In this document: in pieces, positions 14,022 through 64,000 of the stretch | How the letters are laid out: each line of letters begins with the position of its first letter | How positions within the stretch are numbered: the stretch's first letter is position 1 | From: Macrostomum lignano | Taxonomy: Eukaryota | Length of the DNA: 64,000 nt | Assembly: GCA_002269645.1 (NCBI GenBank) | Contig: NIVC01002206.1 | Coordinates: 62,001 to 126,000 of the forward strand | Reading direction: 5' to 3' | Made by a program: the position numbers and the translations under genes | The notes under the pieces: model-generated | Seen by the model: only the letters and a program-made list of their open reading frames with translations | Databases searched by the model: none | Told to the model about the DNA's origin: nothing

Positions 14022-14787
<766 letters not shown>

Positions 14788-16574
14788 TTTTTTCAAGAAA
14801 TATTCAGCCCTATTAATCATATTTCATAATTATGTTAAAAGTAAAACATTAGGGACGGAGAACAATCGAGCAAACAGGTCTTCTGTTTGACAGCAATTAG
14901 ATTTGCTCCTAGTCAAAGCAATTGAGCCCATTCGTTTACTGTTCGAGAGGGCAGCCACCTTCTCGCAATAGTGAGGTGCTCAGGTTGAGCAGAGCAAATT
15001 GAGAAATTAAAATGAAAATCCAGTTTAACAGCTCCCAATTCTCTTTGACCAACCCTTCGGGTCCGCCATTATCCGCGACGCTTTTCTCCTTCCTCTCTTG
15101 TTCTGCTCTCTGCTTTTAGAAGAGGGCCACAGCCACCAATTGGTCTGATTTTGTCCCGCTACGACAGGCACCGAAGTGCTTTTGCCGGCCACTCAAACCG
15201 GCCACTCAGCGCTAAGGCCCGCCCGCGCCATGTTTGCCTCCTGCTTTCGCTCGGACTAAAGGGTCACTCTTCTAATAGCAGAAGCAGCAAAAGCAGTTTA
15301 AGCATACAGAAGCCTCTTATACAATTCTGGTTTGGCGGGTTTTTGAAGCTTCGAGTGTATAAGTTCCATTGTTTAACGCATTGTACCTGGCTTTAATGAG
15401 CGTCTGCAGCGCAGTCAGGCACTCGCGGGAGGGGGGGGGGTTCAACCGTGACCGGCGAGTTTAACCCGCAGGCGTTTGACTGTAAATGATTGCGCAATCA
15501 AGAGACTTAACAGTATATACACACACATACGACTATAGGCATACATTCGCATAAGGTTTGCGCAAGCCCAAAGGCGGCCAAAGTTCCGCCCAGGTCTTGC
15601 ATGCAATTAATTATCAGAGAGCATTTTAAGCCCGTGCGGAGGAGGAGGAGGACTGAGAGCTTGGAGTCCGATTACCATTGACGCCGGCAGCAGCTGGGAT
15701 TTCTCCCATGTCTGCCCCCCCATCGAAAAGCTGACACTTCAATAACTTCGGGTACGCAGATTTCTAAAGCTTCAAAATAATATTGGAGAAAAAATCTAGT
15801 AGCAGACATGCTTGGAAGAATTATTGCTTGCTTGTCTGCTTTTAGTTGTAAAACACCTTGGAACCTTGAAAGTAAATTACATTCTCACACTGCCAGGTGC
15901 TTCTTGACAGAAAAAGCAGACACCCATGCCCAACTGAGTGTGTGTCGATTCTTAGACAATAAAGTTTCTGTTACAGCTGCTGCTGCTGCTGCTGCTGCTT
16001 CCTCTCCACTATCTGGGTCACCGCATGACCGGTCTGTGCTCAGAATTTGGAAACCATGTTTCTCCCTCTGTGCTTGTCTGTCTGTCTGCCCCTGCCCAGC
16101 GCCCCTCCACTGGCCTTCTCTCGTGTCGTCTGGTCTCCTCTAATCTCTCCGCTCGTCGTTCGCTTCCGCATTTCCTTTTTAATCTTCTGCTTCGGGGAGT
16201 GGGGGGGGGCATCCGAAAGCGAGCAGGCTGATTTCAGTTCAGGCTTTATCCCAAGGCACGGCACGCGCACACATTAATCACTTCCGATTGAATTGCTAAT
16301 GAGGGGGGAGCCACGGAGGGCCCCAAATCCTCCCATCTCTGCACCCTGAAACTCGCTCGATTTTATTGCTGTGGAACACTGGCTGGGCGGCCTCATCGTC
16401 CAGGATCTCTAGGATAGCCCTAATCGACATTAAAAGCCGTCTTGCGCTGGCCTGAATGCCGTGTTTCCTTATCCAACAATGCTGGAGGTGATTCACGAAT
16501 TCACAATCTCCAATAGCCCCTAATTTACAAGCCCCGAAGTTAACGTTTGGAAAAAACATTAAAATCTCCGAGCT

Positions 16575-26964: not shown

Positions 26965-27075
26965 TGTTTGATGATCGGAAGAGCGTCGGGGTTCACGGCT
27001 CGAAGGTCGGGGGTTCGATTCCCAATCCCACTGGAACGATTTGTGTCCTTGAGCATCAAGCTTTTCCTCTATCTT
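26965..27075 (+). mobile_element. Degenerate tRNA-derived SINE head (family B)
   Basis: AGAGCGTCGGGGTTCACGGCTCGAAGGTCGGGGGTTCGATTCCC is tRNA-like, with the B-box at 27012-27023. It is followed by TTGTGTCCTTGAGCA, a motif typical after the tRNA head in many SINE2 families. No acceptor stem is present. Confidence 0.5.
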
Positions 27076-28179
27076 TTCCTGCCTAATCTTCTTCCACCGC
27101 CTACAAGTTAAGCAAACAGTTACAGCAACCAGAATTGGTTCCGATCGCACGGATTGCTTAAGAACTTCTCTTATCACTAAGCACACACGGACCTGTATTT
27201 GCAGGCGTGACTCAAATGAGTTCATCAACAACTGTTAACTTTAACAGACGCAGCGTCACCTCTGATTCATTCATTCATCATCAATCGGAAATCTGAAGGG
27301 CAGGATAGGAGGAAGGTGTCAGACCTGACTGATAAAAGCAGATATTGTGGCTTTTGCTTTACGCCTAATTATCGTAGATTGCGAGGCAATCCGCCATATA
27401 AACACGGTCAAAGTTACTCCGGCCGTTCACCTCTCTACACCCAACCATAAAGAGTTCGATGAGGTTGTTAATGATGGAATTGCCCAACGAACTTTATCCT
27501 GTGCAGTTTCCATCATTCCAGCTTAGACGAAAACTATATGTAATAAAAGATTTCCCAAATTGCTTTCTGTTTACGCCAAGATCGCCATCTTCCAGCCTCC
27601 TCTTCATCTCCTCTTATCAGTTCTTAACTGACGCGGCACAACTGAAGTGGCGAATTCTGCCCCAGCAATAGTCATATAGAAGATGTAAAAACTCCAATTT
27701 ATATTTCGCTTCCCATTACACCCGAACCATTTGTACCTCTCCCAATACTCGCTAACCCCAAGCCATAACTTTGCACACAGAATTCCAATATTCGAGTGGA
27801 AATCAGCTCGCACTTCCTTCTCTCTCTCTCTCTCTCTCTCTCTCTTGGTTGTTGGTCGAAGTTCAAGGTGCTGTTAGATGTAAACTCGCAGTTAGAAAAT
27901 AGCATTCCTTTTTTTTCAGTTTTCATCATACCAATGCGATAGCATATCTCCGATAAATATTTATAATTTGAGCCAGTTGTTTGTGCTACAGTGCTGATTG
28001 CTTCCTCACAGTGATAAAATCTCTGTCCGACAGGGAACCCGATTGATTACAGAACTTCTGCTTGCTATTGCAATGCGTTATTTGTTATATGGCTTTGCTG
28101 GGTCATTCTGTTCGTTGTACTACTGTGTCTCTCTGCAGCCCTAGCTGTTCTATACTGATCAGCTTGTAGTCCACCCTCC

Positions 28180-30431: not shown

Positions 30432-32854
30432 ATGAGCAGCAGCAATAGCCAGGTGTCCGGCCATCAGCACCAGCAGAAGCGCAACAACAGCGGAGGCGCC
30501 AACAACAACAACACGAATAAGCCTACCAACGATCTGGCCCAGATAGAGAAGATCAAGCGCATTGTTCAACGCGAGATTCTCGACAATCGTCGGCACCTGT
30601 TCCCCGAAGGCCGATGGCCATCTGACGGCGTCGCCGAGCCGCTGAAGCACCCAGAGCCGTACACGGCCGCTATGAAGTTCGGCGGCCGAGACCCGAATAG
30701 TAAGAAAAGGCCTGGCCTCACTAAACGGCCGCCGAATATGTGGATGGTAAGTCTTTGGAACTTTTACTTACAATTAGATTAGTTCACGCAAAATTTTTTT
30801 AAATTTGCGCCAGTATTTTTGTTAAAAATGAAACCATTCGTTTTTACCCACTGGCAATGCCGCGATGGTAGATAATTTCTGAAAAAATTAGCTTATGCTC
30901 ACGAAACAGTTTAGCTATCATAGTCCTGATGCTCGTGTTTCATTTCCAAGAAATAACGTAAAAGTATAACAAAAAGACATTTCTTGTTTACGAAAACTAA
31001 AGTCTACACAATGTTGGTGGCTACTGATTATTTGTGGCGATTTGTGGCAGTATCACCTTTTGCAGTTTTATAATGCTCAACATTAATTAGAATTGAATAA
31101 ATAAATCTTATGGTTAACATAAAGTAATTAAAATGCCTTCAAATTTGTTTAAACAAATCAAAGAACGAAGCTTGCGATTACATTTATAAAAAATAAGTAA
31201 TAACAGTCGATAAACAATTAGGTCCATGAGAATATCTAGAATTATACGCTCGTAATTTTCTATTCTTTCTTGTTTTTTTTAATGAAACATTTTATCGATC
31301 TAGTATCATTTAAACAATGTTAACTGTGACCAGTGGAAACAAGTTAAAGTAAAAGTGCAAATGAAAAGGTTCGAGACTTGCCCAGGCAGGCTATCTAAAA
31401 TTCTTTCTATTTAACCATTTCAATGAGAGTCTCGCGCCAGCACAGCGGTCTGCAAAAGACTCCATACACATATTTTATGTTCATATTGCTATACTGCGCA
31501 TCCATCGTGCAATCAGTGAATCACTCTGCTAACAAACTAAGTCACATATATAAATCTTATACTTATATTATTATTACTCGCTATATGGGCCCTATTTTAA
31601 AATCTAGAGCCACTCAACGCTACTTGAAATTCCTCCATACCAGAGCGAGGAGGGAGACACAATACCCCCCTTATCACATTCCCTGTCTGTTCGGTACTTA
31701 CACAGCCTCCCAGCGTGCCATACAGAGGCTGAATTATTGATGAAGAATCTGGGAGACCAGACACAGCTGACAGAATTTCTAATAAAATTATTTATTTATT
31801 TCTTGATTTCTAAGATCGACTAATTCAAAATTGAATAGTTTAAGTTTATTTTAAAGCGGAGTTTTAAAATGTCCATATTTCTACTTTGAGTAGACTACGC
31901 GCATAGTATAAACTTAATTAACAATTCATTAAAAAAATCCGCTTTACTCCGGCAGATATTCCGCATGCACGCGGCCTCAGTTGTTATGGAGGACTTCCCG
32001 GAGGTGAACCAGGCGGCCCTGACCTCAGTGCTGGCGCCGATCTGGCAGAGCGTCATCACCCCGGAGGAGAAGGATCTGGTGCGCGAGGAAAGCGAACGAT
32101 TAAAAGAGTTCCACAAGCTGCAGTTTCCCGAGTGGAAGTACAAGCCGCGACAGAAGAAGCGAGCCAGTCAACAGCAGCAGCAACGCCAGGAAGAGGATCT
32201 GGAAGTCGAGGAACCCGACGAGGCGCCAGTGGCTAAGGTTAGTTGCTAAGGCTTCGACCCTCGCACCAAAGTTCTCCTTGTCCCGTATTAATCAACTACC
32301 TAAGAAGAATACTTGAGAGATAATTTGAGTAAAGATGTACTGTACACCCAAAACTTTGAGTCTGGTTCCGGCTTACTCATTCTGCATGCATGCTTAGGGG
32401 TTTCAGCGCTCAACAGGGCCTTAGCCTAATAGTTACTTTCTTGCAACCCCCTTCACTTTAGCGCGAATGTCACCATGACAACAGCAGCAACAACAATAAC
32501 AACCGGTATGCAGCCCGTCAGCGGCAGTTTAATCATCATCAGCAGCAGCAGCTTCAGCCATATCAGCAGCTTCATCACCCGATGCCACAGTCGGTGTCGC
32601 CGTATCTCAGCGCCGAGTCACCCGACGTTGACAACATTGATGGCCTGCAGCTGCCGCTTAGCGTAGAGACTTCGCCGCAGGCTGCGGCAGCGGCAGCGGC
32701 AGTCTCCATGAGCGCCAATTGCTTGCCGTTTGGCTCGGTGTGGACCACCCCGCAGCAGCAGCAGCGGCAGCAGATTCCAGTGTCACTATCGGAAGCTGCT
32801 TCGTATTCTGCAGCTCCGTCTTCGACTGGTCTGCCAGCTCTGTCTCCGCCGCTA

Positions 32855-45653: not shown

Positions 45654-47315
45654 ACAACAACAACAACAACAAAATACGCTGTCAGGATGGCAAAAGTCAG
45701 CGTCACAGGGCGCGCTTCATGGCTTGGGCGCGAACAAAGGCCGCACCACCGGCAGTGTCCGGGGCGCCGGCGTCAGCCACCAGACAGTCGACGTAACGCC
45801 GAGTTCGCGCTTGACCTCACCGGTAGGGTGCCTGCAGCGTGAGCAGCAGCACCTCCTGCACCGGCTGTGGGCAGTACGACTCGGCGCGGATGAGATGGCC
45901 TGCGAGCTGGAGTCGCCGACGGCGCAGTAGATCGCTTGGACGTGGCAGGCCAGCGCGGCGATAGAGTGCCGTGTTGTTGACTCGCTCGACGCCGATGTTG
46001 AAGGCGCAGGCCAGCGTGCGCCGCATCGACTTGCTGTTCGAGTGAGTCCGTCAGCGTCCAGGTCTCGGCGTTGTAGAGCCCTCTGGCGGTCCGGTAGGGC
46101 CTCGGACTGCAGGACTGCCCTCACAGAACGAAAGGCAGCCGAGGCAAGCCCGCGGCGGCGTCGCAGGTCCTCGCGAGCGTCTGGAACCAGACCGCCGAGG
46201 TAGACGAACTGCTGACATTGCGGGAGCTCGGTCGCCTGCCCGTCAGCGCCTCGGCAGAATATTGCAGCCTCGATGTCGTCCGGCACGCAGAGCACAACGG
46301 TCTTCTGCGTGTTGACCACCAGGCCGACGCTCGCCGCAACGGCAACTAGCCTGTCCAGCTGCCGTTGGGCGCCCTCGACGGTCGAGGACAGCAGGGCGAG
46401 GTCGTCGGCGTAGCCAAGCACGCTGAGCCGCTTCTCCGGTTGACGTCGACCCACGCGTCGCCGCAGCAGAAAGCCGTCGTCGTTGGTAGGAAGAGCTTAG
46501 CTGCAGGGCGTTCCTAAAACGCAGCGGGGAGGCGAGCGTCGCACATTCCGCTAGGTAGGAAGAGCAGTCCGCAGCACCCAGTCAAGCACCAGGACGAACA
46601 GGAACGGCGCCAGCGTATCTCCCTGAAGCACTCCGGAGGATGTCTCAAAGGACTCCGATAGACCGTCCGGTGTTGTCACAGCAGCTGTCGTATCACGGTA
46701 CATCGCCATGACGGCGGAGATCAGCTGCTCAGGCACGTTGTACGCGCGGAGCACCATTGGAAGCACGGCTCTGACAACCGAGTCGAATGCCTTCTTGAAA
46801 TCAATAAAGATTAGAATCAGGATCGACTGGCGAATCCGCGCCTCCTCGATGACTCGGCGAAGAGCCAGGATCTGCGCCACTGTGCAGCGATGGGGCCGGA
46901 ACCCGTTCTGCTCTGGGCGCAGGTACGGATCCAGCACGGGCTGCAACCGCGAAAGCAGCATCCGGTTGAACAGCTTCGCTGCACAGGACTGAAGGCAGAT
47001 GCCTCGATGGTCTTCAAGCCTAGTGGTGCCCGGCTTCTTTGGAACAGCGACGATGTGCGTCGTGGTCCATTCGTTGGGCGCCGCCTCACCGAAGAGCACG
47101 CGGTTCATCACTCTGGCGACCTCAGCGGCCACACAGGGGATGCGCAGCGCCTCGATGGGCACCTCGTCCGGACCCAGCGCTTTCCCGCCCGGTGACTGCT
47201 GGGCGAGCTTGACAACGTCGGCTGCGTTGACTGGGGCTACGCTGAAACTCTCCTCTGCCGGCAACGGCGTCTCCGGCGGCAGTGTCAGACTGTCTGGCAG
47301 CGGGGGTGGCGGCGC
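45654..47315 (-). mobile_element. 5'-truncated, inactivated non-LTR retrotransposon (RTE-type reverse transcriptase pseudogene)
   Basis: RT motifs KALGPD, HRGICL, EQNGFRP, FIDFKKAFDSV, GVLQGDTLAP and YADD, then FVYLG and LYNAETWT. It is disrupted by a 69-bp insertion, two small deletions with frameshift and an in-frame stop at 45817. It has a (TTG)n tail at 45673-45654 and a 9-bp direct repeat GACAGACAC at 45645-45653 and 47316-47324. No endonuclease domain remains. Confidence 0.92.
46485..46565. mobile_element. 57-bp insertion with a 12-bp target-site duplication inside the RT gene
   Basis: GGTAGGAAGAGC occurs at 46485-46496 and 46554-46565. Removing 69 bp restores LRTALPT-NDDGFLLRRRVGRR. 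Confidence 0.85.
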
Positions 47316-47537
47316 GACAGACACTCAGACCCACAAGACAGACGCTAAGACACACTAAGACAGACAGACACACTGAGACAGACACTCAGACACACTAAGA
47401 CAGACACTAAGACCCACAAGACAGACACTCAGACAAACAAGACAGACACTCAGAACCACAAGACAGACACTCAGACACACTAAGACAGACACTCAGACCC
47501 ACAAGACAGACACTCAGACACACTAAGACAGACACTA
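47316..47537. repeat. GACA-derived satellite (CACTAAGACAGA / CACTCAGACCCACAAGACAGA)
   Basis: The same motif also flanks the other end of the retroelement (45629-45653) and occurs at about 11165 and 59080-59310. Confidence 0.9.
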
Positions 47538-48590: not shown

Positions 48591-50315
48591 ATGACAACCA
48601 ATCTCAGCGTCAATGGCAGCAATGCGTCGGTATCCATGGAGGACGTCCAGCAAAAGTACATGGGCACGTTGACCTATCCAATTTTGCAAGCGTTCCTCGC
48701 CTACAGTATGCCAATTGTGGTCCTACTAGGCCTCTTTGGTGAGTGAAAATTGCAACATAATTTGCTTTCCACCTACTATCAGTAGCGTTCGTTAACTTGT
48801 TTTTTTTTCACACTATTGCTACTAAAGTCTATAATGTTTCGTCATCGACGCTAGATAAAAAAGTTAGTGCAAATCCTTTTTGTAAAAAAAAAGTAATTTT
48901 GATTTCGTAAAGTAATTTGATGCCTGACGATTAGACAGTCAGGGCCGCTGTACACTCTGTGTGAGCGTGTGCATGAGTGCCGTGCCTGAGTACAGTACTG
49001 GCGCGCTTGTGTGTGCTCAGGAGTCAGCCGGATGGGCAGAATTGCCTCAGCGGATGATGTCGCCGAAGGCGTTTCGCCAGGTTGTTTACAACCTAAAGTA
49101 AATTGAAGTTACTTTCTATGAATTTGCAAATAAATTGTCCCACCGGACATTTTCCCGACTAATTTTCTCTTAGGCAACTTCGTAGCATTCGTGTTGCTCA
49201 AAAACTCGGCACTGCGCAGCACTGCTCATTTCTACCTGTGCGCCCTGACCGTGTGCGACTCACTCACCCTGCTCAGCATGCTCAGCTCCATCTGGGTCGG
49301 AGCAGTGCTCAAGGGTCATTTGTATCAGATGGGCTGGCAGGTCGACTGGCTGCAGGCCGGAACCCGCCAGATCAGCCTGTGCCGCGCCCGCCTCTACGCC
49401 ACCTTCGTCTGTCGGACTGTCAGCACCTGGACGGTGGCCGTGTTCTCCTGGGAGCGCTGCCTGGCCGTCTGGCGCCCAATGCGCTTCGAAGGCGCCGCGG
49501 TAGGCTGGCGCTCCGGCCTGGTGCTACTCGGCCTGGTGGCCACTGCAGCGGCCGTCAACTCTTACGTCATCCCGGGTCTCCAGCCCAACGACGCCGGCCT
49601 CTGCCGAGCCAACCGGCTGTTCCGCATTGGCCGCAACGTCTCCTTGCTGATGCAGTCGCTGGCGCCCTGGCTTCTGGTGCTCGTCAGCAACTGCCTCATC
49701 GTCTGCACTCTGCGCAGAGGGCGGGCGGCCGCCTCGGCTGCCACCGCTGCCGACGCCGCAGTCACCACTACCGCCACCGCGGCTTCTCCGGGCAGCAGCG
49801 AGGAGGCTGTGCTGATGCGCACTCTCCAGCCACATCGTCAACGGCACCGCAGGCACCAGCGTGGCGTCACCTACCGTCTGGTAGCCGTCTCCTTCGCTTT
49901 CTTGGTGAACACCTCGCTGCTGACCGTGTGCACCGTGTGGACGACAGTCGCTGAGCTGATTGAGCCTGACAGCCAAACGGAGCGGAATCTCCTTCGCGAC
50001 ACCTTCTGGCTGATCAGCTTTCTGCCGTTTACAGCGAATTTCGCGTCTACCTGCCCGCTCTACTGCTTGGCTGGGCGGAAGTTCCGGCGCGCGGCCCGGC
50101 TGCTGGTCACCTGCCGGCTGCAGCAGATGCGCCTCGCCCGCCAACTGCTGGATCCAAGCCGGCCGACGTCCGGCCTGCGGGCCACCGCGGTGACCAACGC
50201 GAGAGCAAGACCGCGTTCAGATTCGAGCCAGACCGCGGCAGAAAGTCTGAGGCATCAGCAGCAGCAGACAGCGTCACAGTCGAGAGGGTACGGTCAATTG
50301 ACGATGCATTCTTAA
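48591..50315 (+). CDS. Class A (rhodopsin-like) GPCR, peptide-receptor type, 429 aa, 2 exons: 48591-48738 and 49174-50315
   Basis: Exon 1 is MTTNLSVNGSNAS...MPIVVLLGLFG, with three N-glycosylation sequons. A phase-1 GT-AG intron joins G|NFVAF (TM1 GN). Further motifs are TM2 LCALTVCD, Cys at the TM3 start, FSWERCLAVWRP (E/DRY equivalent), TM5 LAPW and TM7-helix 8 PLYCLAGRKFR. Confidence 0.92.
48921..49093 (+). mobile_element. 5'-truncated SINE (family A, copy 2) in the GPCR intron, with a 13-bp TSD
   Basis: Body TAGACAGTCAGGGCCGCTGTACACTCTGTGTGAGCG...ATGGGCAGAATTGCC...ATGTCGCCGAAGGCG. Flanked by TAAAGTAATTTGA (48908-48920) and TAAAGTAAATTGA (49094-49106). Confidence 0.8.
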
Positions 50316-53247: not shown

Positions 53248-56200
53248 TCAAAACGTCTGCGACGAATTGCCTGGGCTGGTCGACTCTCCGACCCGCCGCT
53301 GCGGCTCGGCCTCGTCCGCCTCGTCTCTGTCGGCCATGACCTGGTCCTCCTGACAGGCGGCAGCAATAGCGGCGGCCCGCTCGGTGCCAACTAGGCCGGC
53401 CGCCATCTGCAGAGTGGCCTGGGCCGACGTTGTCCGCTGGAATCCGCGGCCGCTAAGCGCCGTCTCGTTGCTAGTAGATTTGGCTGTGGGAGCCGCCGCA
53501 GCGTCCAGCTTGCCCTGCAGTCCGGCCACCGCTTCCGCCCACCTGTTGTAATAATAATAATAAACTTTTACAACAATAATAATAGGCGATTCTGCCCATT
53601 GCACTGCTCACACAGGGTGTACAGTTGACCCTCATGGCCCCAAATGAATGTGGCCGCGCTCGGAATCGAACCAGGGTCCTACGAGTCTACCGTTAAGCCC
53701 TCAGCCCACCTGTCCGGACAGTCTAGCATCCGTTCTCGGACGTCCGGACACTGAGAGCTGGCCTCTACTAGCAGTTTAACGCAGCGATAGGCCCGTCTGG
53801 GGTCGAGCTGAGCGCCGGAGCTGATCAAGCCGAGCAGGCCGCCGTCGGACACGACGGTGTCGTCGACATTTTCAACGCCGTAGAGCAGCAGACGGAGCCG
53901 GTCGGACTGCAGCTGGTCGCGAATCAGGAACAGCTCCTTCATCAGGTCTAGCAGCGGTCTCAGCTCGTTAACAGCCGTGTGAGCCAGCTGGGCTAGCAGT
54001 GCGGTAGTCATATTGCGCGAGGCTATTATATTAGCATTGCAGGCGTGCCGCAGCAGGCCGCTCATCGCTGGCAGGAGGCCGGCAGAATCGGCGCACACGG
54101 CGGCGCACAGCTGGCCAAGTAGGGCGGCGCTCCGATCCGAGTCGCTTAGCAACCAGCGTTCCATACTAGGCGACAGGCGTAGCAAAGTCTGCTGCTGTTG
54201 CTGCTGGGCGAAACTGCAATAAGTTGGCAGGGCGCACAGCAGGCGATACAGCGGAGCCAATTCTCGATAGCTGGGCGCGCTCAACGGCTTGAGACTGTCC
54301 GGCTGTTCTGGAAACAGAAACTCGGCCAGACGGCCGAATGCATCCCGGCTGTACAGCACTGAGCAGGCGCGCAGTCGGTGCTCGTCAACGAAGCCGCAGA
54401 GCAGTTGAAAGAAGGCGCCGCACTGGCCCAGATGGCTGGCCGCGGTGCCCAACTGATGGAGCAGGTGATCCACGAACTGCTGCAGCTGAGGAGCGCCGAT
54501 TTGATTGGCGCGAACTTGAAGGTCAAGCGACTCGCCTGCGGAGCGGAGGGAGGTTTAGGGGCGGTTTTTAGGTTTTAGGGGTAATTTTTGAGGTTTTAGG
54601 GGCGATTTTAGTAAGGTTTAGGGGCGATCTGTAGTTACATCTATAGGCGATTTTTAGTGAGGCTTAGGGGCGATTGTTAGTTACATCTATAGGCGATTTT
54701 TAGTGAGGCTTTAGGGCGATCGTTAGTTACATCTATAGGCGATTGTTAGTGAGGTTTAAGGGCGATTTTTAGTGAGGTTTGGAGCGATTTTTAGTGGGCG
54801 CTTATGGGTGATGTTTAGTGAGGCTTAGGGGCGATATTTAGTGAAGTTTAAGGACGATTTTTAGTGATATTTTAGGGGCGACTCTGAGGATGATATTGGG
54901 CTATTCAAAGGGCATGTTAGGAGCAATTGTAAATCAGTTCAATAACAGTCTGTCCCACCTAGAAGCCTGGCTACAGTTTTCCTCTGCTCAGGCATCGGGC
55001 ACACGATGAGATGCTCAGCCAGGTGTCCGGCCTGGCAAAAGAAATCCAAGAAAGCGGCATTAGCCTGGGCCGGGCTGGCAGTGAGCAGGCGCATCAACAG
55101 CCGGTCCCAGGCGGCGTTCAGTTGCGGTGGCTGGCGCAAGCGCTTCTCGGTGCGCAGGAACACCTCGAATAGGAACATCATCAGCAGGCCGGCGGCTTGC
55201 TCGGCCAGCTCCGAGTTCGACGAAGACGCCGCCGCGGCAGCCAAGGGAGCCGACGTGGCCGGCGACGCTGACAGAGTGAAAACTCCGGCTCCGCCCGACG
55301 CCGAAGCGGACGGAGACGAGGCGGCAACGGCAGCTGAAGCAACAGACGATGAGGCGGCCGATTGAACCTGCTGCTGCTCTGAGCTGGGCGGAGCTGCTCG
55401 ATCCAGCACGGACTCGCACAGCCGGTGGATGAAGGTAAAATGAGCCTCATTAAGCAGGTCAGTCTGCCGATAGAAGGTGAGATTGGACTCTCTCACTGCG
55501 GCGGCAATGTGCGCCGGCATAGCGTCTGAGAACAGGCCGCGCTGTTCGCCTCGCTGCACCAGGGCGCTCAACTCGGCGATGCTGTCCCGCTGATGACGAA
55601 AGCTGCTGCCGCCGCCGCTGCGCCTGTTCATCGGCGTCTTCTGCTGCTGCTTCGGCATTGGCGGCGGCGGCGGCGGCGACGCCGGATCTTCTAGTAGAAG
55701 CGACTGAGTGCCACCGCTGGACTGCTGTTGAGACGACTGCGACGGGCTGTCCCGTTCGTAAAACAGCATATAGGCGCTCCAGTACCGCTTGCGCTCCTCC
55801 GGCAGAAAGTTCTCCGTGCTCTGGAAGGTGCCGCCGAAGGCTTCGGATTCCAGCAGCTGGTCGGTGAGGTCGATCTGCTCAATGGTCTGGTCGTTCATCT
55901 TGAACCAGGCGTCCGGCTTGTCTGCAGGCGGGATTGAAACGAAATGGATTATCTAGGGGAATTAATTACTTATAGGTTTATCACTAAACATCAGTAATCC
56001 TCATGAGTGAACGATTTAGACATCCATAATGGAAACTACTTATCAATAATCTAAATAAATCAGTTACTGATGATAATCAGACGGATTATTAACTACTCCG
56101 ACAATACAGATGGATTACCTACTCATCAATAATGCAGATGGATTAAATACTTAACGATAATCCAAATGGATTACCTACTAATCGATAATCTAGATGGATT

Positions 56201-59200
56201 AACTATATATCGATAATCCAGAAGGATTAACTACTAATCGATAATCCAGAAGGATTAACTACTAATCGATAATCCAGAAGGATTAACTACTAATCGATCA
56301 TCTAGACGGATTAACTTCTCATCGATAATCCAGATGGATTAACTACTTATCGATAACCCAGATGGATTAACTACTCATCGATAATCCAGATGGATTAACT
56401 ACTTATCGATAACCCAGATGGATTAACTACTCATCGATAATCCAGATGGATTAACTAATTAACCAGTTATCTGGGTGGACAAATTACTAATTATGGTTAA
56501 CACAATTGGATTAACTATATTTATCGATAATCTCATTGAAAAAAGTTAGCCCAACTCACCGGGCCGACGCTCCCGAACTAGGCTATAATAATGACCAGCG
56601 CTGGCCTTGCCAGAATGAATAACAACACCAACTAAATTGTAGTTAGATGGCTGCTGCTGCTCCTGCATCTCCTGCTCTTTCTGCTGCTGCTGTTGCGGCC
56701 CGTCTGAGGCGCTGTCGCCGCTCGACGCGCCAGCAGCGCTAGCCATAAAAGGCCCCAATTCCACTCGCCTAGGAAAGCTAAAATATAAATCGGATTTCAG
56801 CGGCTGGCCGCGCAGCCAATCGTAGTCGAATCGTTTCAAATGAAAGCACAGCACCGGAGGCAGGCTGGCTATTCTAGTTCGCCTGAGCGCTGTGACCTTC
56901 CGATTGCCGCAGCGTTCGCACGAATAGGCGTTATCAGCTTGCATCGTTTCTCCGCGTACAAAAGCGTGCAGAGCGGCTTCCAGACTGCCGGATTGAACTG
57001 GCAGATGCAGGCCGTAGAAATCTTCTTCAAGTTCGCAGCGATGCTCGCACTGTTCGCTCTCGATCAGGTGCTTGAATCGGCCGCGAAAGAAGGCGCTTAG
57101 TAGGGGGCGCTTAGCCTGCTCGTCTGTTTGGTCAATCAGCGCCTGTTGGGTTGTTGGGGGTTCGGGACGATTAGCGAAGATAGGAGCGATTCTTGTGGGG
57201 CTATGGAGGCGATTCTTGTGGGGCTATGAAGGCGATTCTTGTGGGGCTATGGAGGCGATTCTTGTGGGGCTATGCAGGGCGATTCTTGTGGGGCTATGGA
57301 GGCAATTCTTGTGGGGCTATGGAGGCGATTCTTGTGGGGCTATGGAGGCGATTCTTGTGGGGCTATGGAGGCGATTCTTGTGGGGCTATGGAGGCGATTC
57401 TTGTGGGGCTATGGAAGGCAATTCTTGTATGGAGGGCAATTCTTGTAGGGCTATGGAGGCAATTCTTGTGGGGCTATGGAGGGCAATTCTTGTAGGGCTA
57501 TGGAGGCGATTCTTGTGGGGCTATGGAGGCGATTCTTGTGGGGCTATGGAGGCAATTCTTGTGGGGCTATGGAGGGCAATTCTTGTGGGGCTATGGAGGC
57601 AATTCTTGTGGGGCTATGGAGGGCAATTCTTGTAGGGCTATGGAGGCAATTCTTGTGGGGCTATGGAGGGCAATTCTTGTGGGGCTATGGAGGGCAATTC
57701 TTGTGGGGCTATGGAGGCAATTCTTGTGGGGCTATGGAGGGCAATTCTTGTAGGGCTATGGAGGCAATTCTTGTGGGGCTATGGAGGCGATTCTTGTGGG
57801 GCTATGTAGGTGCAGCATATTTAAAGGCGATTCGCAAGGATATACCTGAAAGAACGCGAACGCGTCCTGCTGCTCTCTCGGATTGACTTTCTCGCCCCAC
57901 AGTGAGAAATTGGCCCACAATTGATCTGGCACGTAGTACTGCTGCTGCAGCTCCAACAGGTGCGCCAGCACCAGCTGCAGCTGGTAGAGGGCACCGTCGC
58001 CCGACTCGCTGCTGCCTCCGCCGTCAACGGAGCTGCCAGAGGCGGCGGTAGCGACAGTCGTTGCCGCCGTCGCAGTGTTCTGCTCGTCGCCAGCAGTCGC
58101 AGTAGGATCCGGCGTTGACAGTACAGCAGCTGCCAGGCCTGGCACCATAAACAGCTGTTGCAGCACCGAATTCATATAGCAGGTGGCACCGCCATTTTTT
58201 AGGCCAACTAAACCGCATTGACCGCGCGGTTCGGGCGGCGCCGGCACCTCCCAGCCGTGGATTCGGTGCAGCGGCCGCAGGGCCAAGCTAAGCGCTCGAA
58301 GGCATCGGCAATTGCTGGCGCACAGCTGCAATAGCAGGTCGTAGATGGCTGGCCGGGACAGTGGCCCGGCACGGCAGTGCGAGTCGGCCGGCATCAGGAA
58401 GGCGCCAATCAGCTGAGGCAGCAGCCGCTCGCCGGCCGAAGGGTCGGGCGGATCCGCCTGCCAGGCCGCTGCCAGCAGGCGCAGGTGACCGGCTAGCAGG
58501 GCGTCCTCCTCCTGCTGGCACTGGCAGGCCGCTGTCTGGCTTAGCTGAAAACCGGTTAGCCAGTCCTGCTCCACGCTGGCTACTCGCCTGAGTGAGTAGT
58601 GCAGTTGGGGCGCGAGTTTAGATAATGAGAAAGAAAAAATAAAAAGCAAAATGAAATAAACAGTCCGACAGACAAACAGGCATACAAACAGGAGGACAGA
58701 CACACAGTTTATGGGGAGCCCAGTGGTCTAGCGCGGCGCTCTGATGTGCCAGCTGCCCAGGCTAGATTCCAAGTGCAGTCACATTAATTTGGGGCTAAAT
58801 TGGAATCTCGACTTGGGTTTTTTTTCGTGAAATTAACGGCCTTGAGGCCAAATCCCCAAGGCAGAGTGAAGTGTACATGACTAACGATAAATAAAGTTAG
58901 GGCCGCTGTACACTCCTGTGTGAGTGTGTGCCTGTGCGTAAGACTGCGTACGAGTCTGTGGAATGGGCAGTAATGCCTCTCGCCGGTTGTGTGACAATGT
59001 CGCCTAAATTGCGCCGGGGTGTACACAGCCCCTGCGTCTAAGAAAAAAGACACACAGACAAGACACACAGACAGACACACATACACTAAGACAGGCAGAC
59101 AGACAGACAGAAAAAAAGACACACAGACAAGACAGACAGACAGACACACATACACTAAGACAGGCAGACAGACAGACAGACAAAAAGACAGACAGACAGA

Positions 59201-62200
59201 CAGACACACATACACTAAGACAGACAGACGGACACTAAGACAGACAGACAGCCACTAAGACAGACAGACACAGACAGACAGACAGACAGACAGCCACTAA
59301 GACAGACAGACACAGACAGACAGACAGACAGCAACTATAACTAACTCACTTAGCCAGTTCAGCCTGTGCAGGCGGAGCGGATCTCAACAGCAGGGCCGCT
59401 CTCAAGTCGAAATACTCAGCGCAGTTGCAGAGCAGATGCAGACTGGCCTGCCGCACCCCGGTTACGCTGGAATGCCAATAGGGCAGCGGCAGGCCCTCCA
59501 GCAGACTGTGCAGAGTCGGCACCAGTTCCGGACAGTCGGGCGTAGCGACTCGCTGCAGCAGCAGCTGGCTGAGCGTCTGGCGAACCCGCTGACTGGGACA
59601 GGCAACCAGCAGGTCCAGCAGGGCGGATTGGAAGCCCGACAGAGAAACGACGTCAGCTGGACGGAAGCCGGGCAAGCCGAACAGGGTGTTGAGAAGGATG
59701 GCGCAGGCGGCCTGGCCGACGGGCTCGCGGGTGTCTCTACGGGGGGTGCGATTGAAGGGTAATATTGGAATAAGAATCAAGGAATACGAAAACTAAAATT
59801 CTGGATTGCTGACACACTAAACTCAGGGATTGCTGACACACTAAACTCAGGGATTGCTGACACACTAAACTCATGGATTGCTGACACACTAAACTCAGGG
59901 ATTGCTGACACACTAACATCAGGGATTGCTGACACACTAAACTCAGGGATTGCTGACACACTAAACTCAGGGATTGCTGACACACTAAATTCAGGGATTG
60001 CTGACACACTAAACTCAGGGATTGCTGACACACTAAACTCAGGGATTGCTGACACACTAAACTCAGGGATTGCTGACACACTAACATCAGGGATTGCTGA
60101 CACACTAAACTCAGGGATTGCTGACACACTAAACTCAGGGATTGCTGACACACTAAACTCATGGATTGCTGATACACTAAACTCATGGATTTCTGACACA
60201 CTAAACTCATGGATTGCTGATACACTAAACTCATGGATTGCTGACACACTAAATCAGGGATTGCTGACACACTAAACTCAGGGATTGCTGACACACTAAA
60301 CTCAGGGATTGCTGACACACTAACATCAGGGATTGCTGATACACTAAACTCAGGGATTGCTGACACACTAAAATCCTAGATTGCTCATGATGGTATGCTC
60401 ATAATAAGCATTGCTACTGAAATTTAAGATCTAAATTCCATTAAAAATCATGAAGCATGAATCTGTCAAACCTCAGAGACGCGGCGCAGGCCAACAGATG
60501 GGCAGCCAATCCGTCTGGAAGGCGCTGCTGCTGAGGATCGCAAGCGCTAACAGACTTGGATACCAGGTGGCCAACCAGGTACAGCTGGCGCGGGGTCAGC
60601 CGCTCCGGAGCCAATTGGACCAGCCTGGTCGCGTGCTGCTCGGCGCACTCGGGCATGGAGAACAGGCACTGCAGAGAGTAGGTTAGCAGCGGCGAATCCG
60701 CGGACAGATCGTCTGCCAGCACCGGATCGGGGCAGGTGGGCAGCAGGTCCAGCACTGCGGCGGCTTCGTAGACGCCCTGGAAATTATTAAAAGGCGTTTT
60801 TAATATCCGGGTTTCCCCGACACATTATCGAGATTCCCCTACACATCAGGGGTTCCCCGGCCTATCATCAGGGATTCCCCTACACATTATCAGGGATTCC
60901 CCGGCACATTATCAGGGATTCCCCTACACATTATCAGGGATTCCCCTACACATTATCAGGGATTCCCCGGCACATTATCAGGGATTCCCCTACACATTAT
61001 CAGGGATTCCCCGGCACATTATCAGGGATTCCCGACATCGGGAGTTCCAGACACCTAATAATATCTTATTAATTAAAGTAATAACAATATATAATAATAA
61101 TATAATTAAAAATAACCTACCTGTCGTAGGCAGCGCTTCAACAGCGGATAGGTGCGCGAATCGTCGGCCAGCAGATTGCTGGGCAGCGCCCGTTCGAGAG
61201 CGGAACAGGCGTCGCTAGACGGAGACTTGACATCGGCAAGTCTGGCGTGGGCGTCAATCGGCTTGTCTGGCTGGGTCGGGTCTGGGCGCAGGCCGAGCAG
61301 GAACAGAGGCCGCCATTCGTGCACAGCGCCTAGTAGGCGTTCGGTGCCGTCGACTGTTACGGCTAGGCCGACTCTGCGAGCATCAAGATGGGGAATGTTA
61401 ACCAGGATTTACAGGTTTGGGATCGGACTTGGCAGGTTTGGGAACACGGGATTGACAGGTTTGGGATCACGGGACTGACAGGTTTGGGATCACGGGACTG
61501 ACAGGTTTGGGATCATGGGATTGACAGGTTTGGGATCACGGGACTGACAGGTTTGGGATCACGGGACTGACAGGTGTGGGATCATGGGACTGACAGGTTT
61601 GGGAACACAGGACTGACAGGTTTGGGATCACGGAATTGGCAGGTCAAGATCAAAGGGAAGTGATATTGGGATAAAGCCGACAGGTTGGAGTTCATGAATC
61701 CAACAGAGAGATATCATAGCACCTCACCTAGAAGCGGAATCGCAATTAAGCGCAATAGCCAGTTCCTCGCGCAGTTTGCCAAACGTTAGATGACTGTGCA
61801 CAGCCAATTGAAAAGCGGCCCGTTTAGGCCTGTCGCAGTCGACTCTGAGCTGCATCTCCTCGCCGGGATAGGTGGCGCAGTGCAACGGCCTCAATCGTTT
61901 GTGCTGATAGTCAGATTCGGCAGTTTGCAAATAGAATTCTAATAGGCGAAGCACGCCGCTAGTGCCTTTAGAGCCGGAATCGTTCAAATGACCGAAACAG
62001 TCGTTTAAGAATCGTTTGTGCAAATCGTTAGCCGCCGAGCCCGCTTTAAGCCGAATGCTGACGCACCGATAATAACAATCCATTAAGCAGTCGAGTGCCG
62101 CGCGGAACACGGCCGGCCGATCCGAGCGCAGGTACAATGACCACAGATAGGACGAGCCGAATAGTTCGAGTTTTTCAACTGTCAATTTGCGCTCCGAGTT

Positions 62201-63865
62201 AAACGAGGTTGGCTGGACAATGGTCAGATTGCCGGCGGCTTGGTTGATCCGCTCGAAGAAGTATTTGAAGCAGGAAAATCCATTTGGCGTCACCTGGGCG
62301 GAGAGTTTATTGAAATTGATGTGAGCTTATTAGACTACTGATGAAGTATAGTAAGTAGCATATCCAAAATTTCATGAAAGATCTGATAACGGAGACACCA
62401 TTAATTTAAGGATTGTTAATCCGTTAATTTAGGGATTGTTAACCCGTTAATTTAAGAACTGTTCATCCGTTAATTTAGGGATTGTTACCCGTTAATTTAG
62501 GGATTGTTAATCCGTTAATTTAGGAATTGTTAATCCGTTAATTTAGGGATTTTTAATCCAGTAATTAAAAGTATTGTTGATCCGTTAATTAAAAGGATTT
62601 TAATCCGTTAATTTCAGGATTGTTAATCCGCTAATTTAGGAATTGTAAATCCATTAATTAAAATGATTGTTACTCCGTTAATTTAGGGATCGTTACTCCT
62701 TTAATTTACACCTGTTAATCCATTAATTTAAGGATTTCTAATCGGTTAATTAACGAACGGCTCTGCTTACACTTACCTTGGCAATATCCAACTGCAGAAA
62801 ATGGTTCTCAAACAGTTCCTTCCTAGTCTTATCCTCTAAGTCATCGAACGATCGAACCAACCAATTAAAGAAGGCATCCCGATCGGTCTCAGTGGAACTG
62901 TCGCCCGAGATTAGCGCTGTCCACATCTCTAACACTCGAATTTTAGTCAAATACAGGTCGGCATTCCTCAGAATGTAGTGTATGAGATCCAAATGTAGTC
63001 GCAGATACTCTTCGTGAGTATAATTACCATCTAGAGACGAGATGGCGCACAGATGCTGACCAAATTGTTTATAACAATCGCGCTGATGATCTTTAATAGA
63101 CGTAACCAGCACTAGTACCAGTTCGTGGCCTTGGTTCCATTCGTTCAATGTATTTTTAGCATCGTTCTTATAGCCGTTAGACAAGGAAGAGCAGAGCTGG
63201 TACAGATAGCTAACAGACGGATAGACCAGCTGCTTAGCTTTGATATTAGCCACACACTTGGTGAGATACTGCCGACGCAGGTTATCCTTTGCGTAGTCTT
63301 TCAACAGTGCCAGGTGTTGCTGCAACACGCAATCAATCTGCTGCCTACCTAGGCCAGACTCGTGCGCCATCTCCCACAGAATCTGCAGCGCCTTCTCTTT
63401 AGCTGCTAAGCCAACTAATTCCACTAGTTTGGACCAATTATCCGATCGGCCTTTGGCCGCTTTCCAATCGGCTTGAACCAGTTGCAACAGGTGGCCAAGG
63501 GTGTCCTCGGGTAGGCGCGATGCGGCAGCGGCCAGCACTGGGAACAGAGCCGGCGACGAGTGCGCCATGTGCCACAGCTTGGTGACGTCACTCACTGACA
63601 GCTTGGCCCCGATGAATTCTACAATCTCTTTCACTCCGTCGCACATTTGCATATTGTCTAGTGAGTGACCGTCGCCCAGAGCCAGGCTGAGAACTTCTTT
63701 CTCTTGCATCCATTGGAGCAGCGGCTCCAGGCCGATGCTCTGACGCTTCTTAGCCGAGCTGGGGTCCTTAGCCGTGGCCATCATGCAGCCAAGCTCCTTT
63801 AGGCCGTTCATTCGACTATTGAACCGGCCGCTGCCTAGCATAGCTTGCACCAGGTTTGTGCGGGC
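53248..63865 (-). CDS. USP24: USP24-like ubiquitin carboxyl-terminal hydrolase, 5'-partial, 2002 aa within the window. Exons (minus strand): 63865-62777, 62293-61728, 61373-61121, 60776-60472, 59736-59350, 58587-57846, 57142-56560, 55921-54959, 54535-53710, 53542-53248
   Basis: All nine introns are GT-AG with consistent phases (6009 nt in total, divisible by 3). The Cys box [28 protein letters not shown], His box [12 protein letters not shown] and WFKMND are intact. Segments I recognise as USP24-type rather than USP9X or USP34 include [39 protein letters not shown] and [11 protein letters not shown]. Confidence 0.93.
53543..53709 (-). mobile_element. SINE (family A, copy 3) that constitutes the entire last USP24 intron
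   Basis: The 152-bp element (53698-53547) has an A-box-like GGCTTAACGG, B-box GGTTCGATTCC, family motifs CACATTCATTTGGGGC, CTGTACACCCTGTGTGAGC and AATGGGCAGAAT, and a (TTA)n tail. It is flanked by a 15-bp direct repeat (13 of 15 identical, first 10 perfect) that contains both splice sites. Confidence 0.85.
54555..54890. repeat. Intronic minisatellite of about 22-23 bp (GGGCGATTTTTAGTGAGGCTTTA-like)
   Basis: USP24 intron 54958-54536. Confidence 0.9.
56080..56530. repeat. Intronic 28-bp minisatellite (ATCGATAATCCAGATGGATTAACTACTC)n
   Basis: USP24 intron 56559-55922. Confidence 0.92.
57180..57810. repeat. Intronic 23-bp minisatellite (GGAGGCGATTCTTGTGGGGCTAT)n
   Basis: USP24 intron 57845-57143. 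Confidence 0.97.
58714..59040 (+). mobile_element. Apparently full-length tRNA-derived SINE (family A, copy 4), antisense within a USP24 intron
   Basis: Head GGGAGCCCAGTGGTCTAGCG (A-box-like), degenerate B-box GGCTAGATTCC (58760-58770) and GTCACATTAATTTGGGGC. A unique middle of about 100 bp is followed by the body TTAGGGCCGCTGTACACTCCTGTGTGAG...AATGGGCAG...ATGTCGCC. Confidence 0.75.
59041..59335. repeat. GACA-type satellite
   Basis: Direct inspection. It abuts the 3' end of SINE copy 4. Confidence 0.93.
59805..60370. repeat. Intronic 24-bp minisatellite (GGATTGCTGACACACTAAACTCAG)n
   Basis: USP24 intron 60471-59737. Confidence 0.97.
60805..61045. repeat. Intronic 22-bp minisatellite (CATTATCAGGGATTCCCCTACA)n
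   Basis: USP24 intron 61120-60777. Confidence 0.94.
61405..61640. repeat. Intronic 23-bp minisatellite (GGGACTGACAGGTTTGGGATCAC)n
   Basis: USP24 intron 61727-61374. Confidence 0.94.
62400..62750. repeat. Intronic 23-bp minisatellite (ATCCGTTAATTTAGGGATTGTTA)n
   Basis: USP24 intron 62776-62294. Confidence 0.92.
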
Positions 63866-64000
63866 CTGGATGGGTTGGAGCGAAGGCTTGCTTTGTTATA
63901 ACAGAATCGCCGGGGATTACAGATTTTGAGCATGAACTGCTAAAGCCGTTATCAGAATTAGGATTGAGATTAAAAATGGGACTGACATTTTGGGAATGGA

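Follow-up and report, generated by a model that had tools for sequence, protein, structure and literature searches.

The 64,000-nt stretch of the Macrostomum lignano genome that was analysed here (assembly GCA_002269645.1, contig NIVC01002206.1, positions 62,001 to 126,000; hereafter the window) carries on its minus strand, from 63865 to 53248, a USP24 gene whose last two exons are separated by a putative spliceosomal intron that consists of a short interspersed element (SINE) and one copy of a direct repeat. The predicted protein is recognised by the Pfam models ARM_UBP24_USP9X-Y (PF25010, 1.6e-59) and UCH (PF00443). The vertebrate matches carry the name USP24, and the C-terminus matches proteins of 2,400-2,600 aa that combine UBA, ARM, UCH and DUF3517. 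Our gene model has ten exons, separated by nine GT-AG introns that were picked by eye. When joined, these exons form a single stop-free open reading frame (ORF) of 6006 nt (2001 codons), which validates the set of junctions, that of the SINE intron included. Exon 9 (53710-54535) follows the acceptor CCGCTCCGCAG|GCGAGTCG and ends in ...TGT CCG GAC AG at the donor GGACAG|GTGGGC, while exon 10, the last one (53248-53542), starts with the rest of a split arginine codon and ends in GNSSQTF and a stop codon.

Intron 9, located between these two exons at 53709-53543 of the minus strand, is 167 nt long, has GT..AG ends and lies in phase 2, splitting the arginine codon as AG|G. The minus strand reads ...TGTCCGGACAG|GTGGGCTGAGGGCTTAACGG... 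at the donor and ...TTATTATTACAACAG|GTGGGCGGAAGCGG... at the acceptor, the complete layout being ...GAC TGT CCG GAC AG|GTGGGCTGAGGGCTTAACGGTAGACTCGTAGGACCCTGGTTCGATTCCGAGCGCGGCCACATTCATTTGGGGCCATGAGGGTCAACTGTACACCCTGTGTGAGCAGTGCAATGGGCAGAATCGCCTATTATTATTGTTGTAAAAGTTTATTATTATTATTACAACAG|GTGGGCGGAAGCGGTG.... The coordinates and sequence facts of an earlier, sequence-only reading of this locus, which had described a GT..AG intron of this same length, were found correct when the minus strand was read again. That reading also held that the unspliced frame would stop after WAEGLTVDS and lose about 97 aa, and this we can confirm: the stop is reached nine codons into the insert, at the cost of 97 conserved C-terminal residues. 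After removal of 53709-53543, the frame stays open up to the stop codon at 53250-53248. Both splice sites resemble others in the same gene, the donor CAG|GTGGGC being comparable to TAG|GTGGGA of intron 8 and the acceptor ACAACAG|G to CCCAACAG|G of intron 6. Furthermore, a branch-like motif, TTTAT, can be read by eye about 19 nt upstream of the acceptor AG. When the in-frame GT..AG pairs of the region were compared, the 53710/53542 pair alone yielded a product that is colinear with the orthologues. The alternative donor ACG|GTAGAC, mentioned in the sequence-only reading, was rejected: joined to the 53542 acceptor it shifts the frame, and with the acceptors that preserve the frame conserved residues are lost. 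There is also an in-frame alternative donor, CTC|GTAGGA at 53683 (minus strand), inside the SINE head. Together with the same acceptor it would add WAEGLTVDS before the conserved tryptophan, giving a possible minor isoform with nine extra residues.

The direct repeat that brackets the insert, ACAGGTGGGC, has the appearance of a target-site duplication (TSD). Its upstream copy (53704-53713, minus strand) spans the ACAG that closes exon 9 and the GT of the donor, its downstream copy (53537-53546, minus strand) spans the AG of the acceptor and the GTGGGC that opens exon 10, and the two match in 10/10 positions. Outside the SINE and this repeat there is no intron sequence at all, and exon bases form part of the repeat on both sides. 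A TSD of 15 bp had been proposed. The 15-mers at 53713-53699 and 53546-53532 are indeed identical in 13/15 positions, but the first ten bases, which form the perfect ACAGGTGGGC, are the only secure part: beyond them 3/5 bases match, which is not significant (estimated p~0.16), and similarity ends thereafter. The arithmetic of insert plus repeat is satisfied by 157 + 10 as well as by 152 + 15. Likewise, the position of both mismatches at third codon positions, which had been taken as evidence, concerns bases outside the secure repeat, and would occur by chance with a probability of ~0.11. As such, the secure length of the TSD is put at 6-10 bp, perhaps less.

Direct repeats of 10 bp are common in the window, with 45 isolated pairs at a distance of 60-1000 bp versus ~170 in block shuffles, and the repeat alone is therefore little proof. 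It gains its significance because its copies bracket the SINE exactly, because excision restores an orthologue-colinear ORF, and because the position is intron-free elsewhere. The probability that a repeat would match by chance right where the segment homologous to the family begins and ends is estimated at ~1e-4, allowing ±5 bp per end. The matches that are informative beyond the splice consensus are GGGC at +3 to +6 and AC at -4 to -3; by our estimate these would coincide with a probability of ~6e-4 per intron, or <0.01 over the nine introns inspected.

The SINE body (53547-53703, minus strand; 157 nt given a 10-bp TSD) lies in sense orientation to the gene, and is built, from 5' to 3', of a tRNA-like head, two core blocks and a simple-repeat tail. 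The head carries an exact match, GGTTCGATTCC at 53662-53672 (minus strand), to the RNA polymerase III B-box consensus GGTTCGANNCC. Exact B boxes occur three times in the window versus 0.27 expected, and all three are located in tRNA-like SINE heads. The motif upstream of it is only A-box-like: GGCTTAACGG (53690-53699, minus strand), read by eye from the sequence, agrees with GGCNNAGTGG, the trailing 10 positions of a common A-box variant, in 6/8 specified positions. Core block 1, CTGTACACCCTGTGTGAG (53607-53624, minus strand), is shared with window copy B in 18/18 and with copy D in 17/18 positions; core block 2, AATGGGCAGAATCGCCT (53584-53600, minus strand), is shared with copy D in 15/17 and with copy C in 14/17. 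The tail, ATTATTATTGTTGTAAAAGTTTATTATTATTATTACA (53547-53583, minus strand), is T-rich and (TTA)n/(TTG)-like; ahead of the acceptor it would act as the U-rich tract and probably hold the branch region.

Both blastn and nhmmer matched the insert to three other copies in the window, B, C and D, in agreement with the number given in the sequence-only reading, and the nhmmer family profile detects the window copies with E-values of 1e-34 to 1e-83. Three blocks, GGTTCGATTCC..GCGGYCACATTNATTTGGGG, CTGTACACCCTGTGTGAG and AATGGGCAGAATCGCCT, follow one another in a common order across all four copies in a MAFFT alignment. Judged by these similarities, the insert is a member of a dispersed tRNA-type SINE family. 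Copy B (14029-14803, minus strand) is of the full-length type and intergenic, with an internal (GACA)n array. Copy C (58700-59040, plus strand), also of the full-length type, lies antisense within intron 5 of USP24 and makes up only part of that intron. Copy D (48908-49094, plus strand) is 5'-truncated and intergenic, and is flanked by a 13-bp TSD, TAAAGTAA(T/A)TTGA, that matches in 12/13 positions, from which it follows that the family inserts with TSDs. For copies B and C no TSDs were found, their flanks being microsatellite. The other elements of the family measure ~330 nt, and the intron copy is a short variant of 157 nt that, aligned with the other three copies, shows two internal gaps. 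Neither ARAGORN nor Rfam, at gathering and E-value thresholds, reported a tRNA or other RNA family in the SINE head, and folding the head as RNA produced no cloverleaf (z = 0.24). The head was accordingly rejected as a tRNA gene, and is taken as a degenerate tRNA relic. Two scans of metagenome contigs for the SINE motifs returned nothing, or chance matches of 19-24 nt in bacterial coding DNA.

Is the position of intron 9 shared with other animals? While a first homologue search with the spliced C-terminus gave no matches, a HMMER search with a 694-residue C-terminal query returned 201 relatives. The long ones align past the junction at query residue ~597 (P0002 at 237-647, P0005 at 245-654), with homology extending to ~650. 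In a 12-sequence alignment the spliced product is gapless on ...ANKCPVAKDYLVSIMAK|WQWAIIWLKKKM..., bearing out the claim that excision restores the conserved protein. The orthologues show the motif xxKWQWAVxWLKKKM at the junction, in which the tryptophan right after the junction is nearly invariant, and SNE...FQRTxSAQxTL is conserved downstream. Exons were then mapped on six genomic USP24 loci: those of rainbow trout, the amphioxus Branchiostoma floridae (PMC10796407), the animal assembly GCA_964355755.1, the sea spider Pycnogonum litorale (PMC12220506), the amphipod Trinorchestia longiramus (PMC7062882), and an intronless eukaryotic metagenome contig. The placement of all nine window introns against those of the orthologues is approximate, since tblastn missed small exons, and we rely on it for intron 9 alone, where the orthologue positions are sharp. 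An intron at the R|W codon is absent from all six loci, the nearest introns being located 11-14 codons away. Trout and sea spider have an intron 13-14 codons upstream (AxK|C), while trout, amphioxus and GCA_964355755.1 have one 11-13 codons downstream, at KK(M)|xEH. The amphipod and the metagenome contig have no introns across the last 155-170 residues. The Macrostomum exon carries neither of these two ancestral introns. Sliding of the ancestral KK|M intron over 11-13 codons was considered as a source of intron 9 and rejected, as the SINE and the repeat account for the whole intron. On the evidence of these six loci, the position of intron 9 is lineage-specific.

Taken together, these data indicate that retroposition of the SINE into a continuous USP24 coding exon probably created a spliced intron of 167 nt, with restoration of the mRNA. 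The absence of any intron sequence outside the SINE and the repeat, and the presence of exon bases in both repeat copies, argue that the target was contiguous coding DNA. A SINE that enters an old intron would leave old sequence outside its TSDs, so that here the insertion itself would have made the intron; the lack of an orthologue intron at this codon, combined with the lack of sequence outside the repeats, leads to the same conclusion, namely that the intron is lineage-specific and insertion-made. In the scenario we favour, a short tRNA-derived SINE would have retroposed in sense orientation into ...CCGGAC AG|GT GGGCGGAAG..., the target being the continuous coding sequence CCGGACAG|GTGGGCGGAAG with a MAG|GT proto-splice site, and the empty site presumably having read ...CCGGACAGGTGGGCGGAAGCGG.... 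Target-primed insertion, of which the TSD and simple-repeat tail are suggestive, would have duplicated 6-10 bp, ACAGGT(GGGC), so that an AG|GT came to stand on either side of the insert. Of the two repeat copies, the first would then have become the 5' splice site CAG|GTGGGC and the second the 3' splice site ACAACAG|G, and the (TTA)n tail would have supplied the U-rich tract and branch region. The TSD of copy D and a long interspersed element (LINE) reverse transcriptase in the window also speak for this scenario. Both splice sites, in other words, would derive from the target and not from the SINE's own 5' end. The spliceosome is expected to take out the SINE with one repeat copy (53709-53543), restoring the pre-insertion mRNA exactly and keeping the conserved C-terminal 97 residues in frame. 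That the SINE landed on an AG|GT site in a conserved USP24 exon, with the duplicated target supplying both splice sites, was the central proposal of the sequence-only reading, and it passed all the tests that were run. The insertion had also been called recent, a qualification that we drop, as no dating is possible from the sequence.

Several observations nevertheless weigh against such an origin, or against parts of it. Compared with copies B, C and D, the intron copy misses ~70 nt of shared sequence at the 3' end, and its tail is a T-rich (TTA)n rather than A-rich. Searches of the window with nhmmer, using either the family profile or the element alone, yielded no family members beyond these four, and hence no master copy of the short subtype; the intron copy is the single short one. 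Furthermore, the alignment with copy C and the tRNA numbering place GGGC, or even GGTGGGC, within the SINE: MAFFT pairs GGTGGGCTGAGGG of the intron copy with the 5' start GGGGAGCCCAGTGG of copy C, and tRNA position 1, when counted back from the A-box-like motif, falls at GGGCTGA. In copy B, the head is preceded by GGGCTGAA. The TSD could on this basis shrink to ACA-ACAGGT and the donor GT might be element-derived; 4-7 of the ten repeat bases may represent the 5' end of the SINE, joined by microhomology. Lastly, M. lignano DV1 contains 180 Mb of duplicated blocks that are at least 95% identical (PMC5730564), and with duplications this large and recent, a disrupted extra copy of USP24 could be tolerated. 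This raises the alternative of a real SINE insertion that is spliced poorly or remains unspliced, the locus being either a USP24 allele that is disrupted or truncated at the C-terminus, or else a redundant duplicate, in which the downstream ORF is intact merely through the youth of the insertion. Besides the duplicated blocks, the stop nine codons into the insert would suit such a locus, as would the perfect 10-bp repeat, which permits a very recent event. However, both splice sites, the U-rich tract and the branch-like motif are found exactly at the places where they are needed, the remaining gene is an uninterrupted 6-kb ORF, and the GTGGGN type of donor is in use elsewhere in USP24. We therefore consider a failure of splicing unlikely. 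The same gain could also have come about by break repair, where a staggered double-strand break would have been mended with a SINE fragment, DNA or cDNA, as filler, and the repeat would stem from fill-in at the overhangs. Capture of filler at staggered breaks is the pattern proposed for new introns in Daphnia. The missing canonical 3' end and the two internal gaps would be expected of a fragment, the tail is not A-rich, and the short type is seen only once in the window. Yet the insert begins at or near the tRNA-like 5' head, its simple-repeat tail directly abuts the repeat, and the block order of the family is kept, as in an intact retroposon unit of a short subfamily; moreover, the LINE in the window likewise ends in a (TTG)n-type tail. 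Repair with a SINE fragment thus seems distinctly improbable to us.

As to whether the SINE could have entered and filled an old intron at this position, copy C inside intron 5 demonstrates that insertions of this kind occur in the gene. With nothing intronic outside the SINE and the repeat, exon bases at both ends of the latter, and a codon that is intron-free in all six orthologues, this explanation is close to refuted. The sequence-only reading, which had named an intron at the same codon in distant orthologues as the sign of an old intron, had in addition presented the element as a candidate introner. A true retroposon introner family would have a native 5' GT (GGTGGGC...) and account for many introns genome-wide. 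The pairing of GGTGGGCTGAGGG with the 5' start of copy C would be in line with a native GT, and introners derived from retrotransposons without long terminal repeats (non-LTR) exist elsewhere (PMC12130899). On the other hand, copies B, C and D, the only others in the 64 kb, do not form introns (0/3) and belong to the longer subtype, no further short copy was found in the window, and scans of the metagenome collection yielded nothing related. Within the window the introner label finds no support, and we hold it very improbable that the family as a whole is of this kind; that the short (TTA)n subtype is an active retroposon introner, favouring or surviving at AG|GT sites, perhaps with a 5' GT of its own, and seeding many coding introns, is a conjecture we regard as highly doubtful. 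Retroposition into the coding exon, with splice sites taken from the duplicated target, remains our preferred account of intron 9.

How does this intron compare with gains described earlier? Introners are families of transposons that generate introns, mostly DNA transposons (PMC9860276, PMC12130899; reviewed in PMC11282704), and have been reported in two animal groups only (Gozashti et al. 2022, PMC9860276). Non-LTR retrotransposons are the source of about 5% of the classified introner families (Gozashti et al. 2025, PMC12130899). In introners, as proposed for USP24, a transposable element gives rise to an intron on insertion, and its TSD lends a splice site; the GT and AG of the SINE intron lie in the two repeat copies. 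Introners are however defined by many similar copies that form introns, whereas the Macrostomum family has one intron copy alongside three window copies that are not introns. A close parallel is the rice catalase A gene (CatA), where a SINE insertion made a coding intron, according to a 1998 paper cited by Sela et al. (2007, PMC2394776). As far as that citation describes it, this was likewise a single, gene-specific gain in which a SINE in coding sequence became a spliceosomal intron. It differs in concerning a plant, while in the animal Macrostomum both GT and AG seem to come from the duplicated target and the mRNA would be exactly restored. The sequence-only reading had treated retroposon-derived introns as unusual, but this rice intron, in so far as the citing paper recounts it, and the non-LTR introners (PMC12130899) both precede the present one.

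Sela et al. (2007, PMC2394776), who list only two intron origins as known, also report four Alu intronizations in human 3' untranslated regions (UTRs), in last exons. There too, insertion of a SINE into an exon activates a new intron. The Alu introns, located in the 3' UTR, are alternative (of the retention type) and use sites within the Alu or the old exon. The USP24 intron, in contrast, lies in conserved coding sequence, would break the frame if it were retained, and carries its splice sites at the TSD. A further route to intron gain is tandem duplication of a segment that contains AGGT (cited in PMC2394776; potato RNA-dependent RNA polymerase, PMC4974935). According to what these sources relate of it, two AG|GT copies serve as donor and acceptor and one repeat unit is removed so that the frame is restored, just as proposed here. 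The interior of such an intron is duplicated exon, whereas that of the USP24 intron is a foreign SINE, and the duplication consists of just the 6-10-bp TSD. As such, the mechanism is already known, and the USP24 case is a new and unusually clean example of it in an animal coding exon. In the literature, we found no paper that connects Macrostomum, SINEs and intron gain.

Few introns reveal their origin in the sequence itself, and such introns are very rare in the coding regions of animals. Here the whole event is contained within 182 bases: a proto-splice site, a retroposon, a duplicated target, and a conserved protein that would be exactly restored. Since public RNA sequencing data, several lines, recent genome duplications and sequenced congeners are available for M. 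lignano, the locus is directly testable. If the SINE subtype made further introns, introner biology would be extended to SINEs in animals. Were the short subtype indeed an active introner, it would represent the first family of SINE-type introners known from an animal, seeding an otherwise intron-poor flatworm genome; the M. lignano genome has ~5 introns per gene (PMC5730564).

The remaining introns of USP24 are of a different make. Seven of the nine introns are dominated by minisatellites, a different one in each, with a unit of 21-28 bp in 10-27 copies and 71-94% matches (54550-54881, 56065-56457, 57189-57810, 59803-60372, 60804-61037, 61411-61644 and 62401-62751), and the SINE intron is the sole USP24 intron without any array. 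Moreover, the 2001 Macrostomum codons contain 9 introns versus at least 32-41 in full orthologues (2,458-3,180 residues) from amphioxus, GCA_964355755.1, sea spider and amphipod. At least intron 3 seems co-positioned with two orthologues, on the same approximate mapping, in which small exons were missed by tblastn. These counts point to heavy intron loss in Macrostomum USP24, with a single SINE-borne gain on top. With regard to existing annotation, the UniRef entry A0A1I8FIP6 of Macrostomum lignano ('Alba domain-containing protein') matches 60440-63900 (minus strand) in several frames, with identical runs of 27/27 and 30/30 residues. Judging from these runs, this entry is a frameshifted mis-model of the same USP24 locus, and the public annotation is wrong. 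The abundance of simple and tandem repeats in the window likewise agrees with M. lignano as its source. It was the single database match in a search with the ARM region, and contributes no independent model of the C-terminus.

The LINE mentioned above is a reverse-transcriptase remnant at 45655-47324 (minus strand) in two ORF pieces (RVT_1, 5.9e-20 and 5.7e-06). Its ORF remnant, 47324-45720 (minus strand), is followed by a short 3' UTR that ends in (TTG)5. Similarity between the SINE tail and this 3' end (~45.66 kb) is weak, with 21/500 shuffles scoring as well, and the remnant is a possible partner type for (TTR)n-tailed SINEs. The (GACA)n microsatellite of copy B spans ~430 bp between its head and core (14240-14670, minus strand), and long tetranucleotide arrays also border copy C and occupy 42.2-44.3 kb. 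At 26975-27080 (plus strand) lies another tRNA-like SINE head, unrelated to that of the intron element and of a different family, whose B box, GGGGTTCGATTCCC, is likewise exact. Copy D ends ~40 bp upstream of an intronless ORF of 393 codons at 49134-50312 (plus strand), which encodes a G protein-coupled receptor of the rhodopsin family (7tm_1, 4.3e-11). Finally, an ORF at 31890-32246 (plus strand) shows a weak, sub-threshold match to the HMG box (E = 0.008, 17 bits versus a cut-off of 25.4), and may represent one exon of a Sox-like gene, situated beside long coding-like poly-Q/poly-A repeats.

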